This document shows, piece after piece, positions 12,001-16,244 of a stretch of 64,000 nucleotides of DNA (positions within the stretch are counted from its first letter, which is position 1; every line of letters begins with the position of its first letter). The stretch comes from Macrostomum lignano (lineage: Eukaryota): positions 92,982 to 156,981 of the forward strand of contig NIVC01001999.1 in NCBI GenBank assembly GCA_002269645.1, read 5' to 3'. Made by a program: the position numbers and the translations under genes. Below the pieces are notes generated by a model. That model worked only from the letters and a program-made list of their open reading frames with translations. It ran no database searches and was not told the DNA's origin.

Positions 12001-15000
12001 AGAGTATAAATTCTGAAACAGTCGAATGGCATGCAGAGTCTGAGTTGAGAATGAAAAGTCTGGCAAACAGCAAGAATTGAGTTCGCAGCTGCACGAACCG
12101 CGGCCACCGGGTGCAGACGGAAGACGGCCCGCCTGTGGCAGCAGTTGGGCGTCAGGCCGACTCTGCAGCCGCCGCAGCCGCTGACCTTCAAGTAGCAGCG
12201 CGACAGCATGTGCCGCAGGCGAACCGGCTGCCCCCAGCTGACCGGACCGCCGGGCACGCAGCCCTCCGCCAGCTCCACCTGCCAGTAGCCGGTTGCCGGG
12301 GACTCCCCGTACATGTACGACGAAAGAGCTGACGAATACCCCGCAGCTTCAGGCGTCGGAGTCTTCAATCCATCGTGGGTGAGATTCTCGTCAGTCAAAG
12401 TTGCACCGCGGCATCGAAGTTGAACCTCGTCGTCCGGCCGTTGTTGAGCGGCCGTCGGGAAGGCGGGGCGGCGGCAGACCAGCTGGCCTTGCAGCTCCGA
12501 GTGAGTCAGCAGCACCGGCTGGCCGGCGATCAGTGGCGGCTCGCCGCCTCCTCGACTGCGGCAGCGAAAGCGGAGCGTCAGGATGAAGCCGCTCGGTCGG
12601 ACGGAGACACCAATCTGGGGGGGGGGGCAGTGTAAAGTATTCTTGATTTTAGTACTTTTAGCACGCATTTACCCTTATGAACTCCTGGTGTCCCAGTGAA
12701 AGAAGGTGTTCAAACAGTTTTTTTTCTGATTCCATTGAGCTAAACGCATCTGACTCGTACTCACCACCAATGTCGCACGGTACATGTATTCTCGCCCAGG
12801 AGGGCCAACCCCACGGCACAAGGAGTGTACATGCACATTCTGTGCGGCCCTGATGACTACTATAACTATCGGGCTAACAAACCAGCTAGTTTTTCCCGTC
12901 CAGACTACTCTCTAGAAGTCCATGGTCTGTAGAATAAAAATGGCGAAAATGGTGGGTTGCCGAACCCCTCACCGGATGCGCTGCACCCGGAGCCGCTGTG
13001 GAAGAAGCGGCGGGCAGGACGTGCAAAAAATGCCCGGCCGATTTCACCGTCTCCAAGGCAACCTGGTCGCCGAGCCGGACTGGGTCGCCCTCCGTCTGCA
13101 GCTTGAAACGCGGCGCCAGTCGCAGCAGCGCCGAAGCGCCAGCAGAAGCGGCGCCAGCGCTGCACAACCCGGAGCGAAGGCCGCCGCCCGAGTTGGCGCC
13201 GGCGCGCACGCAGCGTCCGGTGAAGACGTGGCGCAGCTGCACAACCTGGCCGTAGTGAATCTGGCGCCCCGCCTGGCGCCGCTGCTCAGCCAGGTTGGCG
13301 GCCGCCTCTGCCGCTGCCGCAATCTGCCCAAAAATTAGGAATTTGTTCAAGTCGACATGTTGCACGGCTTGATGCAAGGCAGAGCTCAGAAAGTCCTATG
13401 CGCACCTATTTTTACTGCTCAGCGGAATGCTCATGCCTGTTCGTCTCCCTGCTGGGTGCAGGGGCGCGGCCAGGAGTCTTTATCGAGGGGGCATCAATTC
13501 ATGGAAGGAGCACCACTTCATAGAGGGAGCACCACTTCATAGAGGGAGCACCACTTCATAGAGGGAGCACCACTTCATGGAGGGAGCACCACTTCATGGA
13601 GGGAGCACCACTTCATAGAGGGAGCACCACTTCATGGAGGGAGCACCACTTCATAGAGGGAGCACCACTTCATAGAGTGAGCATCACTTCATGGAGGGAG
13701 CATCACTTCATAGAGGGAGCATCACTTCATAGAGGGAGCATCACTTCATTTAGTGAGAAATCTATACGAGCGTAAGGTGGAGAGGGAGATGGATAGGGAG
13801 AATGTCATTCTGCTAAATAAGTTTGTAAGGTGAAGAATGAGGTTAGGGAGATGCGCCAGCACTGGAGAAGGGTAGAGAAGGGAGGGGCTGAGCTGAGAGA
13901 GGCGGGAGTTGCGAGGAGGATCGGAGAGAGACAACAAAGAAAAAATCGTACCCAGTGACTCACCTTCAACTGAGTGAGGCGGGCTTTCACGGCGGGCTCC
14001 AGCTCCGTCTCCTCGGGGCCAGTGACGGAAGCCAGCAGTTTCCGGTGCTGCTTCTGCAGTTTGTAGCAGTCGGGAGCGCAGATCTCGAAGGAAAGCGCTG
14101 TGGGAGTTTCACGGGCTTACTTTTTACTGGAGCTACGGAGATCACTTAGAAATGATTCAGGTGTCATTTTTCGAAGCAGGGACTTCTTTGCAGGCCCTGT
14201 GACGGATTTCTCAACAGGAGGCCTGCATGTTTCATTCTTAGTGGGATAAAAGACCGTATTTTAAATGCACACAGTCATTTTGAATGAGTTATCGTCTCAT
14301 TAAGAGTTGCGTTTAACATTTTAACATTAAAATGTAAGATTTGACTTTTGATGTCACTTTAAGTTCCCCAGTAGCTGCAAAGAAACCAAGCTAAATTTTC
14401 GAGAATACTTCGAAGCCTAAAGAATAAAGTAGAACAACGACTTTGGCTACTCAAAAAGCGCTTCCCGAAAAGTTTTGTAGATTTTTCGATAGTCTCTCAA
14501 ATGGAAAGAACAAGTTTGTCCCCGTGCGGTATCAAATTTAACGTTGCACATTTCCATCGGAATCCGATACGAAGCCACGCCTTGCAGACTGGCTGCAGCA
14601 GTGACAGAGGCTTCAAACCTTGGCCCAGGTGATATCCAACACTTGAATAAATAGTTACGGCTCAAGGAGGCGGGGCGGATCGTCGGGCTATAAATTGTGA
14701 TTGTGTAAGGTCAGCAGAAAGCAAAAATGTTGGAAACCCAGCTAGATTCTCTCAGAGTGGATTTTTTCATCTCAAGCTTAAAATGAGAGTTCTGTGGATC
14801 GTCCCCTTGCTGGTCTGTATTGTCTTGGCATTTGGTGAGTGGCTCACTCAAGGACCATTAGTTTAGTCACCTGATAGACACTGTCATGGATGCTCTGGAA
14901 CACCAGGGCCACACAGAGCAGACAGAAAAAGCGAGACAAAATTGCTTTTCAGACAATTCCGAAGCGGCGCCAAGATGGAAGCTGCGGCCTTTGCGAAACG

Positions 15001-16244
15001 GCGGGTTCGCCAAGAGCCCGTTCCAGAACCTTCGCAGATTTTTCAACCGCGGGAAAGGCAAGAACCCGAACAGGCTAACTCATGGTGGCTCTAGAGGCAA
15101 CTCCGGTCATTGGAAAGACGGACCAGGCATGAGGATGGGGATCCGTGGAATAATTTATCAATAGGCAAGGCCAGGTGAGTCAGCATTCGGTAGTTCAGCT
15201 GCAGTTGGCAACCAACACCCCAACCAGCTGGTGAATACGTCATCAATAATGAGCTTCATGACTTCTGACAAACCGATCTGATTTGGTGTTGGTTGCCCCT
15301 CGGGTTCACAGCAAAATAAACAGTTCGGACTCCGAGTTTTCATTGAATTTTGTTTTCTGTGATTGTTTATTTGTGCTTGAAGACTCATGTTAGTGCCCGC
15401 ACTTTCCCGCTGTGCGAGCAGTTCAGAGAGCCTCAGATTTCTCACCTTGGCTGTCCGGGCACTGCGGCTGCTGCTTGCCGCCACCGCTGCGGACCATCAG
15501 GCAGTCGTGCATGGAGCTGCGTGAATTTTGAGAATTGGCATGGAACATTGTGCTTTCGGGTTCAGGAAAGCAGATTAGACAGAGAAATAACGGACAGACA
15601 GACCGACAGACAGACAGACAGACAGACAGACAGACAGACAGACAGACAGACAGACAGACAGACAGACAGACAGACAGACAGACAGACAGACAGACAGACA
15701 GACAGACAGACAGACAGACAGACAGACAGACAGACAGACAGACAGACAGACAGACAGACAGACAGACAGACAGACAGACAGACAGACAGACAGACAGACA
15801 GACAGACAGACAGACAGACAGACAGACAGACAGACAGACAGAAAGACAGACAGACAGATAGACAGACAAACAGACAAACAGACAGATAGGCAGACAGACA
15901 GACAGAAAGACAGACACTAAGACAGACACACAGACAAACAGACAAACAGACAGACGACAGACAGACAGACAGACAGACAGACAGACAGACAGGCAGACAG
16001 GCAGATAGGCAGACAGACAGACAGGCAGACAGACAGACAGACAGACAGACAGACAGACAGACAGACAGTCAGTCAGACAGACAGACAGACAGACAGACAG
16101 ACAGACAGCAGCTCACCCGGACTCTGCAGCAAACGCGAATCCTCCACCATCAACAGAGTACAGGGCGACGGTGTCGCCGAACCGCAGAAGGCCGTCTTCG
16201 CCGCGGCCCAGCCGGTCAACCGCAGGTGTGTTGGCAAGCTGCAT
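1..16244 (-). CDS. ITPR: Inositol 1,4,5-trisphosphate receptor-like Ca2+ channel, multi-exon, N-terminal part (3' end lies beyond the window start)
   Basis: Spliced GT-AG exons read by eye: 16117-16244 (MQLANT...[11 protein letters not shown]), 15446-15516, 13964-14097 ([16 protein letters not shown]), ~12930-13350 ([14 protein letters not shown]; [13 protein letters not shown]), ~12064-12618 (MIR: GYWQVE...[10 protein letters not shown]), ~10435-10615, 10212-10349 (EKQKLLRQ), 9427-9615, ~8716-8845, ~8200-8465, ~6797-6895, ~6483-6725, ~5900-6345 ([23 protein letters not shown]), ~3537-3630, ~2799-3046, ~2552-2685, 397-702 (second RIH), 1-~40. The order suppressor domain, MIR, RIH, RIH matches ITPR1. 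Confidence 0.88.
397..702 (-). CDS. ITPR: ITPR-like exon, second RIH domain
   Basis: Acceptor ccctcgcag, donor gtaatt, 306 nt; [39 protein letters not shown]...[10 protein letters not shown]. Confidence 0.8.
760..2400. repeat. 30-bp intronic minisatellite (GAGTTCAAAGTGGAGGGTTTCCTGATCGCT), with 33-bp variants
   Basis: About 50 tandem copies between ITPR-like exons. Confidence 0.95.
3100..3402. repeat. 30-bp minisatellite (GTAAGGAGGCTCCAGTGCACAGAGAGTGCG)
   Basis: About 10 tandem copies. Confidence 0.95.
4080..5872. repeat. Compound minisatellite: 23-bp unit (CCAGCTGTTTGGAGAGCAACCCA) followed by 30-bp unit (CAGCTGTTTGGAGAGTACAAAATACCCTAA)
   Basis: The unit switches at ~5545; both units share the core CAGCTGTTTGGAGAG. 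Confidence 0.95.
6905..7978. repeat. ~38-42-bp minisatellite (CAGCCACACCCCAAATAGGGTCTGAG(GA)n)
   Basis: Tandem copies with a variable GA tract. Confidence 0.95.
8530..8705. repeat. 16-bp minisatellite (CTGATCCCCTGACCCT)
   Basis: About 10 tandem copies. Confidence 0.9.
9000..9420. repeat. (ATCA)n microsatellite
   Basis: Directly visible. Confidence 0.95.
9624..9857. repeat. 41-bp minisatellite abutting an ITPR-like splice acceptor
   Basis: TTCATTGGATTGTGTATGAGCAGCAGGCATCTAGATCACAG x ~6. Confidence 0.9.
10655..11100. repeat. CT-rich low-complexity repeat (CCCCTTCTCTCCCT-like)
   Basis: Pure pyrimidine tandem tract. Confidence 0.9.
11500..11995. repeat. 40/42-bp minisatellite (GAGAGTGAGAGTCAGGGGAGCTGACA(AA)GTTGGAACAGAATG)
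   Basis: About 12 copies. Confidence 0.9.
12064..12618 (-). CDS. ITPR: ITPR-like exon, MIR domains
   Basis: [20 protein letters not shown] resembles ITPR1 [20 protein letters not shown]; also GYWQVE...[21 protein letters not shown]. Confidence 0.8.
13505..13750. repeat. 20-bp minisatellite (GGGAGCACCACTTCATAGAG)
   Basis: About 12 copies. Confidence 0.9.
14671..14694 (+). promoter_or_regulatory. GC box and TATA box of the nested peptide gene
   Basis: GGGGCGG at ~14672-14678; TATAAA at 14689-14694; Inr-like TCAG at 14711. Confidence 0.55.
14783..15164 (+). CDS. Small secreted cationic peptide precursor (112 aa, 2 exons), nested antisense in ITPR-like intron 2
   Basis: Exon 1 14783-14834 ([17 protein letters not shown], signal-peptide-like); 43-nt intron GTGAGT...TAG; exon 2 14878-15164 joins in frame; upstream TATA; AATAAA at 15315-15320. 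Confidence 0.72.
15590..16110. repeat. (CAGA)n microsatellite filling ITPR-like intron 1
   Basis: Directly visible. Confidence 0.95.

Follow-up and report, generated by a model that had tools for sequence, protein, structure and literature searches.

Small mussel foot proteins of the mfp-3 and mfp-5 type are secreted, very basic and disordered, with a size of about 5-9 kDa and a high content of Gly, Asn, Arg, Lys and aromatic residues. Disordered small cationic proteins with abundant Gly, Asn, Arg and aromatics can bind and coacervate in gland secretions; the known adhesive proteins of Macrostomum lignano are very large. Antimicrobial precursors of the dermaseptin, cathelicidin and alpha-defensin type join a signal sequence and an anionic pro-piece to a small cationic product. 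In flatworms, mesco-1, -2 and -3 of Mesocestoides corti are small secreted cationic peptides that were found by genome mining, contain Gly/Arg motifs and, modelled in isolation, give structure predictions of low confidence; of their three genes at least two are intronless, and in mesco-2 the N-terminal helix is bent at GRGIGRG and the tail carries a disulfide bridge (PMC11546468). From the same species group as our locus come Mlig-pro1-76, the prostate-limited putative seminal-fluid transcripts of M. lignano, many of which are short, with a signal peptide (38/65) and no BLAST hit (31/76) (PMC5977470).

The locus described here, in a 64,000-nucleotide stretch of M. lignano DNA (the window), is a real gene. 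We put at roughly 0.7 the probability that it is a TATA-driven two-exon Macrostomum gene for a small, secreted, very basic orphan peptide that binds polyanionic targets outside the cell. Homology to the RNA-based model of a second copy establishes the gene structure at the level of sequence, and the predicted signal sequence points to secretion. Like the dermaseptin, cathelicidin and alpha-defensin precursors, the gene encodes a predicted signal sequence and a small cationic product, but the product lacks an anionic pro-piece and cysteines, shows no significant amphipathic helix and is not similar to them in sequence; DNSEAAPR (net charge -1) is all that separates the hydrophobic core of the signal from the basic region. 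It resembles the mesco peptides in its flatworm origin, size, charge, predicted secretion, discovery from genome sequence, Gly/Arg-containing motifs and low-confidence structure prediction, whereas its gene has two exons, its mature part is free of cysteine and of any long predicted helix, and homology to them was not detected. In size, basicity, disorder and composition it is similar to mfp-3 and mfp-5, a likeness that serves as a lead only, and there is no homology; because its aromatic residues are mostly Phe and Trp, with one Tyr, DOPA chemistry is unlikely. Unlike Mlig-pro1-76, the gene does not occur in the list of in-situ primers compiled for them. The parts of the locus, in window coordinates, are as follows.

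14673..14678, + strand: GC box GGGCGG, found by pattern search and identical in the second copy; its position upstream of the TATA box is what suggests a role
14689..14694, + strand: TATA box TATAAA, found by pattern search and conserved in the second copy
14727..14786, + strand: candidate upstream open reading frame of 19 codons, its TGA stop overlapping the main ATG
14735..14782, + strand: 5' untranslated leader, minimum extent, equal to the in-frame 5'-partial start of the second-copy GenBank coding sequence
14783..14834, + strand: coding part of exon 1, 52 nt from the ATG at 14783, giving 17 residues and the first base of the next codon
14835..14952, + strand: phase-1 intron of 118 nt, GTGAGT...TTGCTTTTCAG, placed by homology to the second-copy intron
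14953..15164, + strand: coding part of exon 2, beginning in the split Asp codon, with 69 further residues and the stop (TAG, 15162-15164)
15165..15335, + strand: 3' untranslated region, with AATAAA at 15315-15320 (kept in the second copy), then T-rich

Pattern search found the GC box, the TATAAA, the ATG exon, the GTGAGT donor, the stop at 15164 and the AATAAA at 15315 where a first-pass annotation of the window had placed them. Its remark that the track of open reading frames misses exon 1 also holds, exon 1 alone being an ORF of only 27 aa. The TATA box lies 46 nt 5' of window position 14735, which matches the 5' end of the second-copy GenBank model. The upstream ORF at 14727 is open in both copies, and because the homologous model begins, as assembled, at the equivalent of 14735, it is probably located at or before the transcript start; it may be absent from the mRNA, or too near the cap for use. 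The ATG at 14727 could disturb translation if it formed part of the mRNA.

The gene family is already known as a deposited hypothetical protein, and the window copy has no record of its own product in the protein databases. Using tBLASTn, we confirmed a near-identical second copy at a colinear locus: BOX15_Mlig027405g1, hypothetical protein, partial (GenBank GCA_002269645.1, contig NIVC01004032.1). The first-pass annotation had called the gene hidden and undescribed, and this deposit corrects both words. GenBank's annotation of the assembly rests on RNA-seq, from which a genome-guided transcriptome was built (PMC5730564). Window 6325-19945 is colinear with a segment of NIVC01004032.1 at 90-95% identity, both copies have an actin gene downstream followed by a short-chain dehydrogenase, and the 87-aa window product matches the deposited protein at 89% identity over 100% of the query (E = 9e-34). 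Full-length similarity, exon structure and synteny are thus all shared with the Mlig027405 orphan family. Both copies retain the donor, acceptor, TATA box, GC box, start, stop and AATAAA, and the 3' UTR of the second contains an 81-nt insertion; the second-copy coding sequence is annotated as 5'-partial because its leader is open in frame. The gene exists in at least two copies with an identity of about 95%, which the genome's recent large-scale duplication would have produced.

The search for other relatives was negative. Among 1.84 billion representative proteins, searched exhaustively, the GenBank second copy was the only hit, no Pfam family was matched by the 87-aa product, and the peptide gene is nowhere mentioned in the literature. 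The statement that no family could be recognised is borne out, and sequence comparison indicates no homologues outside Macrostomum.

The second copy also decides where the intron ends. Its model, join(10001..10100,10218..10432), has an intron of 117 nt, which an exhaustive scan identified as the sole GT..AG intron that gives the deposited protein, and it fuses the signal-peptide exon straight to the cationic-body exon. The equivalent intron of the window is therefore 14835-14952 (118 nt, ending TTTTCAG); its acceptor at 14952 has a pyrimidine run and CAG, a form shared by four further acceptors of the window. This intron spans both the 43-nt intron (14835-14877) and the 75-nt acidic spacer of the first-pass annotation, which had described a 112-aa prepropeptide with a signal peptide, a 33-residue anionic pro-piece and a 62-residue cationic mature peptide. 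With the 25-residue acidic stretch being intronic by the sole RNA-based model of the family, the layout of signal, anionic pro-piece and cationic peptide, and its likeness to antimicrobial prepropeptides, for which the pro-piece had been the chief argument, collapses. What stands is the complete + strand unit with its hydrophobic signal sequence and cationic body rich in G, R, K and aromatics; the shorter intron and the 112-aa product give way to an intron of 118 nt and a product of 87 aa.

We regard the 43-nt intron as very unlikely. The GT at 14835 and an AG at 14876-14877 do exist and would join in frame, the alternative is likewise open in the second copy, and it could be a minor isoform with an alternative 3' splice site. 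Against this, the deposited model uses the downstream acceptor and no other, and the upstream acceptor, CCTGATAG, is without the pyrimidine run and CAG of the four other window acceptors. Further, the spacer's words occur in no protein among 5.8 billion clusters, a 75-nt stretch is open in one frame by chance ~24% of the time, and all three spacer differences between the copies would be non-synonymous.

The 87-aa product is predicted to consist of a signal sequence of 17-22 residues, judged by rule of thumb, and a peptide of 65-70 residues. Exon 1, whose tblastn match is 100%, encodes the core of this signal: a basic n-region (M-R) precedes a 15-residue hydrophobic core at residues 3-17 with a mean Kyte-Doolittle value of 3.0. 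There are two candidate cleavage sites, VLA|F and SEA|A, both with small residues at -3/-1, and DNSEA may be the end of the signal peptide itself. The peptide that follows contains no cysteine and is rich in Gly, Arg and Asn; the composition of the 62-aa tail, 14 K/R against 1 D, was confirmed as first reported, and in both copies the net charge is +12 and the pI about 12. The AlphaFold2 model (mean pLDDT 57) contains only a helix over residues 6-20, in the signal, and one of 9 residues in the mature part; the mature peptide is predicted to be disordered. An amphipathic helix was not detected, the maximum hydrophobic moment being no higher than that of shuffled sequences (p = 0.17 and 0.31).

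We propose that exon 1 supplies the signal-peptide core and exon 2, after removal of the 118-nt phase-1 intron, the rest of the 87-aa pre-protein. The nascent protein would be targeted to the ER, and its signal peptide would be cut following Ala16 or at the more canonical site following Ala22 (..DNSEA|APRW..). The secreted polypeptide would then be 65-70 residues long, about 7.5-8 kDa, with a pI of about 12 and a net charge of +12 to +14; it would be cysteine-free and intrinsically disordered, with abundant Gly, Arg, Asn, Lys and aromatics. Outside the cell it would most likely act by electrostatic and aromatic binding to polyanionic targets, for which microbial envelopes, mucus or glycan matrices and a partner's tissues are candidates. 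The corresponding roles, in host defence, as a reproductive secretion or as an adhesive or mucus component, are guesses.

Between the two copies, the introns are 96.6% identical with one 1-nt indel, whereas the coding parts of exon 2 are 92.9% identical with one in-frame 3-nt indel. There are 10 non-synonymous against 3 synonymous codon differences, a 5-codon patch is rewritten with its length preserved, and the second copy differs from the window product by 10 amino-acid replacements and one extra Arg. Despite these replacements each copy has K5 R10 D2 E1, and hence an identical charge. With the intron better conserved than the coding exon and the codon differences at 10:3, the comparison does not demonstrate purifying selection on the protein; as read from these sequences, the pattern fits either fast adaptive evolution or weak constraint.

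A gland secretion, either a seminal-fluid (prostate) peptide or an adhesive or mucus component, is a possible but doubtful reading of the product. Its composition resembles that of small mussel foot proteins, and replacement-biased divergence, as seen here, is typical of reproductive proteins. Orphan short transcripts with signal peptides are also typical of prostate-limited genes in M. lignano (PMC5977470). However, the gene is absent from a compilation of M. lignano transcripts characterised in situ, from the prostate and other organs (Brand et al. 2020, Table S11). Mlig027405 is not in that table, a weak negative since the window copy may carry another identifier, and no forward primer there matches the first 160 nt of the mRNA; twelve 8-mers tiling these 160 nt gave one chance match, to an unrelated reverse primer.

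Alternatively, the product might be a host-defence (antimicrobial) peptide of epidermal, gut or gland cells that binds microbial envelopes as a polycation, which we consider unlikely. The signal sequence, small size, net charge of +12 and interspersed W/F/Y are consistent with such a peptide, as is fast, replacement-biased divergence with conserved charge. Because the classical lophotrochozoan AMP families are absent from flatworms, lineage-specific AMPs are expected in them (PMC10414684), and mesco-2 is a Gly/Arg-containing cationic AMP in another flatworm (PMC11546468). By contrast, the hydrophobic moment and the structure prediction, with no confident helix beyond the signal peptide, speak against this role, the corrected splice leaves no anionic pro-piece, there is no homology to any known AMP, and high charge by itself is weak evidence.

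It is improbable, too, that the transcript is real and its ORF young, weakly constrained or non-functional, that is, lineage-specific, possibly de novo, and with no selected protein function. Such an ORF would account for the lack of homologues outside Macrostomum, for an intron better conserved than the coding exon and for a low-complexity, disordered protein body; at such numbers, 10 non-synonymous against 3 synonymous differences are indistinguishable from neutrality. Yet both copies preserve the ORF with its frame, the signal sequence and the two splice sites, the indel and the rewritten patch respect frame and length, and the counts of basic and acidic residues are equal. At the locus a phase-1 intron also follows a clean signal-peptide exon, as is typical of genuine genes for secreted proteins.

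A neuropeptide or hormone precursor, with cleavage at basic sites and perhaps amidation (as in ..FFNR-Gly-Lys), is highly improbable: a predicted signal peptide does precede a short precursor, and the conserved NRGKGK / NRGKGR could be a Gly-Lys/Arg amidation and cleavage signal, but one such site arises easily in Gly/Lys/Arg-rich sequence, the sole dibasic site of the window copy (RR, residues 45-46) reads RS in the second copy, no peptide unit is repeated, exhaustive searches found no similarity to any flatworm neuropeptide family, and the gene diverges fast, whereas neuropeptides are usually conserved.

The first-pass annotation had further placed the gene inside intron 2 of an ITPR-like gene. 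An ITPR/RyR-like exon is indeed present at 13021-13320 on the minus strand, where it aligns to ITPR1 residues 95-196 (E = 5e-6) and matches Pfam Ins145_P3_rec (1.6e-10). The exons for ITPR residues 1-94, which nesting would place on the other side, were located by no tool; the candidate 5' exons 16116-16322, 15161-15496 and 14450-14710 have no ITPR or RyR match, and the homologous GenBank segment of the second copy has no annotated ITPR gene. The peptide gene may lie inside the ITPR-like gene or just upstream of it, and nesting was not confirmed.

For the small, secreted, very basic orphan peptide that we favor, a speculative and less probable reading is that the Mlig027405 family evolves fast, is confined to Macrostomum and acts as a polycationic effector, which would be either a host-defence peptide of a new flatworm type, disordered and non-amphipathic, or a charge-driven component of a gland secretion (seminal, or adhesive/mucus). 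If so, selection would act on the net charge of the peptide and not on the sequence itself.

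All the signals that the first-pass annotation had listed for a small gene on the forward strand (GC box, TATA box, ATG, splice donor, stop codon and AATAAA) were found in place.

Signals at the peptide locus
14673, + strand: GC box, GGGCGG, present in the sequence
14689, + strand: TATA box, TATAAA, present in the sequence
14783, + strand: main ATG, opening a 52-nt coding stretch (17 residues and one further base) up to 14834, with GTGAGT next
15162-15164, + strand: stop codon, TAG, present in the sequence
15315, + strand: AATAAA, present in the sequence

The first-pass annotation had joined the ATG exon across a 43-nt intron to an AG at 14876-14877, giving a 112-aa precursor. 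A search of 5.8 billion protein clusters with this product returned one relative, an entry from the free-living flatworm M. lignano, 'hypothetical protein BOX15_Mlig027405g1, partial' (Mlig027405; E = 9e-34), in which the signal-peptide exon joins DNSEAAPR directly and the 25-residue stretch proposed in between is skipped. At the homologous locus on NIVC01004032.1, join(10001..10100,10218..10432) translates exactly to this protein, and when every GT..AG pair at that locus was tried exhaustively, the 117-nt intron alone reproduced it. The window equivalent is a 118-nt intron at 14835-14952 (GTGAGT...AATTGCTTTTCAG), and the product is 87 aa rather than 112 aa. This downstream acceptor is a pyrimidine run followed by CAG, as are four other placeable acceptors in the window (one in actin, one in the ITPR-like gene and the two in ODAD1 that served as splice-site references), whereas the upstream acceptor reads CCTGATAG. 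The deposited protein is matched by the downstream acceptor alone. A real, small gene for a secreted peptide had thus been correctly spotted and then mis-spliced, and its special-looking precursor layout is an artefact of the acceptor chosen.

Could the upstream AG nevertheless give rise to a minor isoform? It would join in frame, and that frame is open across the 75-nt spacer in both copies, an outcome with a chance probability of about 24% at this base composition. The spacer's words occur in no database protein (word-indexed search, 5.8 billion protein clusters), and between the copies it shows 0 indels and 3 substitutions, each of them non-synonymous if the spacer is coding; a two-copy comparison of this kind would not by itself decide between the acceptors. 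We regard such an isoform as quite improbable.

NIVC01004032.1 is colinear with window positions 6325-19945 at 90-95% identity, including in introns, minisatellites and intergenic DNA, and both have the same actin and short-chain-dehydrogenase genes on the downstream side; this colinearity and these common neighbours identify the window as a second copy of the region. M. lignano is a hidden polyploid. Its assembly holds 180 Mb in duplicated blocks, and the GenBank annotation of that assembly was not made ab initio; it derives from a transcriptome that was assembled under genome guidance, with StringTie and TACO, from RNA-seq reads (SRP082513 and SRR2682326) and a mapped de novo transcriptome (PMC5730564). 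Because the annotation of the sister copy is RNA-based, the Mlig027405 family is transcribed and spliced.

An upstream ATG at 14727, absent from the first-pass list, begins a 19-codon ORF (14727-14786) that is open in both copies and whose TGA shares bases with the main ATG (A-TGA). In window coordinates, the homologous GenBank model has its assembled 5' end at 14735, slightly 3' of this ATG, so the upstream ORF may be missing from the mRNA, or so close to the cap that it goes unused. Both copies have a consensus-like GGTGAGT at 13 nt past the stop codon (window 15177-15182; homologous region 10444-10449), where a 3'-UTR intron or an alternative end is possible. The 3' UTR of the homologous region carries an 81-nt insertion.

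A HMMER profile of both copies, run exhaustively against 1.84 billion representative proteins, returned the sister protein alone, Pfam gave zero matches for the peptide, and no further paralogues came up when the window and the homologous region were searched with the peptide by tblastn. Within public protein data, the family is a Macrostomum orphan, which agrees with the earlier statement that no family could be recognised. It is not undescribed, as had been proposed, in that it was already deposited through the sister copy as a hypothetical protein; the window's own copy is unannotated. The gene joins the lineage-specific small secreted cationic proteins, an already known class.

Exon 1 encodes a basic n-region (M-R) followed by a 15-residue hydrophobic core of mean hydropathy 3.0, modelled by AlphaFold2 as a helix over residues 6-20. 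The phase-1 intron sits exactly behind this core, a common arrangement in secreted-protein genes. By the -3/-1 rule, signal cleavage could occur after Ala16 (VLA/F) or Ala22 (SEA/A); the latter would provide a textbook c-region and place DNSEA within the signal peptide. With residue 18 taken as its start, the mature chain has 70 aa, a mass of 7.9 kDa, a pI of about 12, a net charge of +12 (K5, R10, D2, E1) and a GRAVY of -1.2, with 12 Gly, 7 Asn, 5 Pro, seven aromatics and zero cysteine; the 14 K/R against 1 D previously counted in a 62-residue tail were reproduced. AlphaFold2 confidence (mean pLDDT 57, pTM 0.22) is too low to justify a fold search, and the mature part is modelled with a single element, a helix of 9 residues (40-48). 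The maximal helical hydrophobic moment does not exceed that of shuffled sequences (p = 0.17 for the window copy, 0.31 for the second copy). On these predictions, the best description of the peptide would be a disordered polycation, and neither a disulfide-knotted peptide nor an amphipathic helix.

Sequence identity of the two copies by segment
Upstream region: 93.7%
TATA box to ATG: 95.7%
Exon 1: 94.2%
Intron: 96.6%
Exon 2: 92.9%
3' UTR: 88.3%

Codon differences between the copies comprise 10 replacement and 3 silent changes; the copies also differ by one in-frame extra Arg codon and by a five-codon patch rewritten at equal length (RMGIR vs MNQAR). Both copies keep the reading frame, the splice sites and exactly the same numbers of basic and acidic residues. 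At this short inter-copy distance, no purifying selection on the coding exon is detectable. The pattern would fit a fast-evolving effector whose charge matters and, at these numbers, is indistinguishable from weak constraint.

The searchable literature contains no mention of the gene identifier or of peptide words, and Mlig027405 is absent from the accessible parts of the Wudarski 2017 and Brand 2020 supplements. It is likewise absent from the compiled M. lignano in-situ primer table (Table S11 of Brand et al. 2020). When the first 160 nt of the mRNA were tiled with twelve 8-mers, the in-situ primers yielded one match, by chance, to an unrelated primer. Going by this table, the gene is probably not one of the markers characterised for prostate, testis, ovary or adhesive organ.

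The functional readings overlap, so their probabilities need not total one. Foremost, at roughly one in four, is a gland or epithelial secretion that acts by charge, in reproduction, adhesion or mucus. Host defence is a more tentative proposal: flatworms are without the classical lophotrochozoan AMP families (PMC10414684) and a cestode possesses a Gly/Arg-containing cationic AMP (PMC11546468), precedents by which the antimicrobial reading would retain some plausibility, but its main structural argument disappeared with the splice correction. That the peptide is a weakly constrained young ORF we hold to be just as doubtful as host defence. A neuropeptide is very unlikely, since the single dibasic site is not conserved between the copies.

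The peptide gene had also been placed inside an intron of an ITPR-like gene. This neighbour, an ITPR/RyR-like gene on the minus strand, is real: its N-terminal-domain exon, 13021-13320 (-), corresponds to ITPR1 residues 95-196 (alignment E = 5e-6) and matches Pfam Ins145_P3_rec (1.6e-10), more ITPR-like exons lie at lower coordinates (weak MIR match), and gene segments also occur at 11961-12668 (-) and 6034-6345 (-). No close protein match to the exon was found at E <= 1e-5 among 5.8 billion protein clusters, and the homologous GenBank segment has no annotated ITPR gene. The exons that encode residues 1-94 have to be sought at higher coordinates than this exon. Three candidates (16116-16322, 15161-15496 and 14450-14710), single or concatenated, retrieved nothing in Pfam and PDB searches, and for residues 1-94 tblastn with a mammalian ITPR1 N-terminus gave chance-level matches only (E at least 0.5). 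A 12-residue stretch at 16155-16187 (-) resembles the ITPR N-terminus by eye (tblastn E = 2.9) and is unsupported in Pfam and PDB searches. The antisense of peptide exon 2, considered as an ITPR exon (17 residues vs ITPR1 57-73, E = 2.9), was rejected: PDB and Pfam were silent save for a chance gallinacin match (E = 0.09), and concatenating the segment did not raise the profile score. With the exons for residues 1-94 unplaced, the peptide gene is either nested in a 5' intron of the ITPR-like gene or head-to-head just upstream of it; we lean towards nesting.

Other genes and elements of the window
17379-17504 and 18505-19509, + strand: two-exon actin gene (Pfam Actin 7e-127; 377 aa by manual splice)
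20188-20768, - strand: pair of adjacent ORFs, with a weak tyrosine-recombinase match in one (Phage_integrase, E = 0.002)
24937-30404, + strand: BEL/Pao-type LTR retrotransposon with long open gag-pol frames
35382-38163, - strand: AIF-like oxidoreductase exons (Rieske 3e-15, Pyr_redox_2 2e-13)
41767-42821, + strand: ODAD1 (outer dynein arm docking complex) coiled-coil exons (Pfam ODAD1_CC 7e-48)
59842-63911, + strand: sacsin-like gene (Pfam SACS 1e-49)

Long minisatellite and microsatellite arrays are very dense (696-2535, 4019-5957, 6901-8135, 13485-13749, 15593-16108, 17551-18491, 31160-33956 and 44146-44775), with a (GACA)x129 array directly after the peptide gene, and many yield long spurious ORFs in all frames. 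The single actin intron, of about 1 kb, is almost wholly an 18-nt minisatellite (18-mer x52), and the 377-aa product compares with 391 aa in the GenBank sister model, so the actin copies or models differ. One AIF-like ORF continues into a minisatellite-encoded low-complexity stretch. The retrotransposon's first ORF carries DUF1759, Peptidase_A17 and RVT_1 and its second, overlapping by 4 nt, rve and DUF5641; the ORF pair at 20188-20768 (-) may be the remnant of a Crypton- or DIRS-like element. Consecutive long sacsin-like ORFs switch frame at about 61470 and about 62855, where splice signals are not visible; these junctions were rejected as short introns for calibrating minimum intron size, look like frameshifts, and reflect either a pseudogene or indel errors of long-read assembly. 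A single-exon ORF at 52546-53916 is itself absent from public records.

At present, the main value of these results is corrective: the peptide gene is real, and its AMP-like layout was due to a wrong acceptor. Its unannotated second copy illustrates how small genes are lost in duplicated, repeat-rich Macrostomum assemblies. If the peptide is a host-defence or secretion effector, it would represent a further lineage-specific family for a phylum about whose antimicrobial repertoire almost nothing is known, in a species amenable to transgenesis and RNAi.
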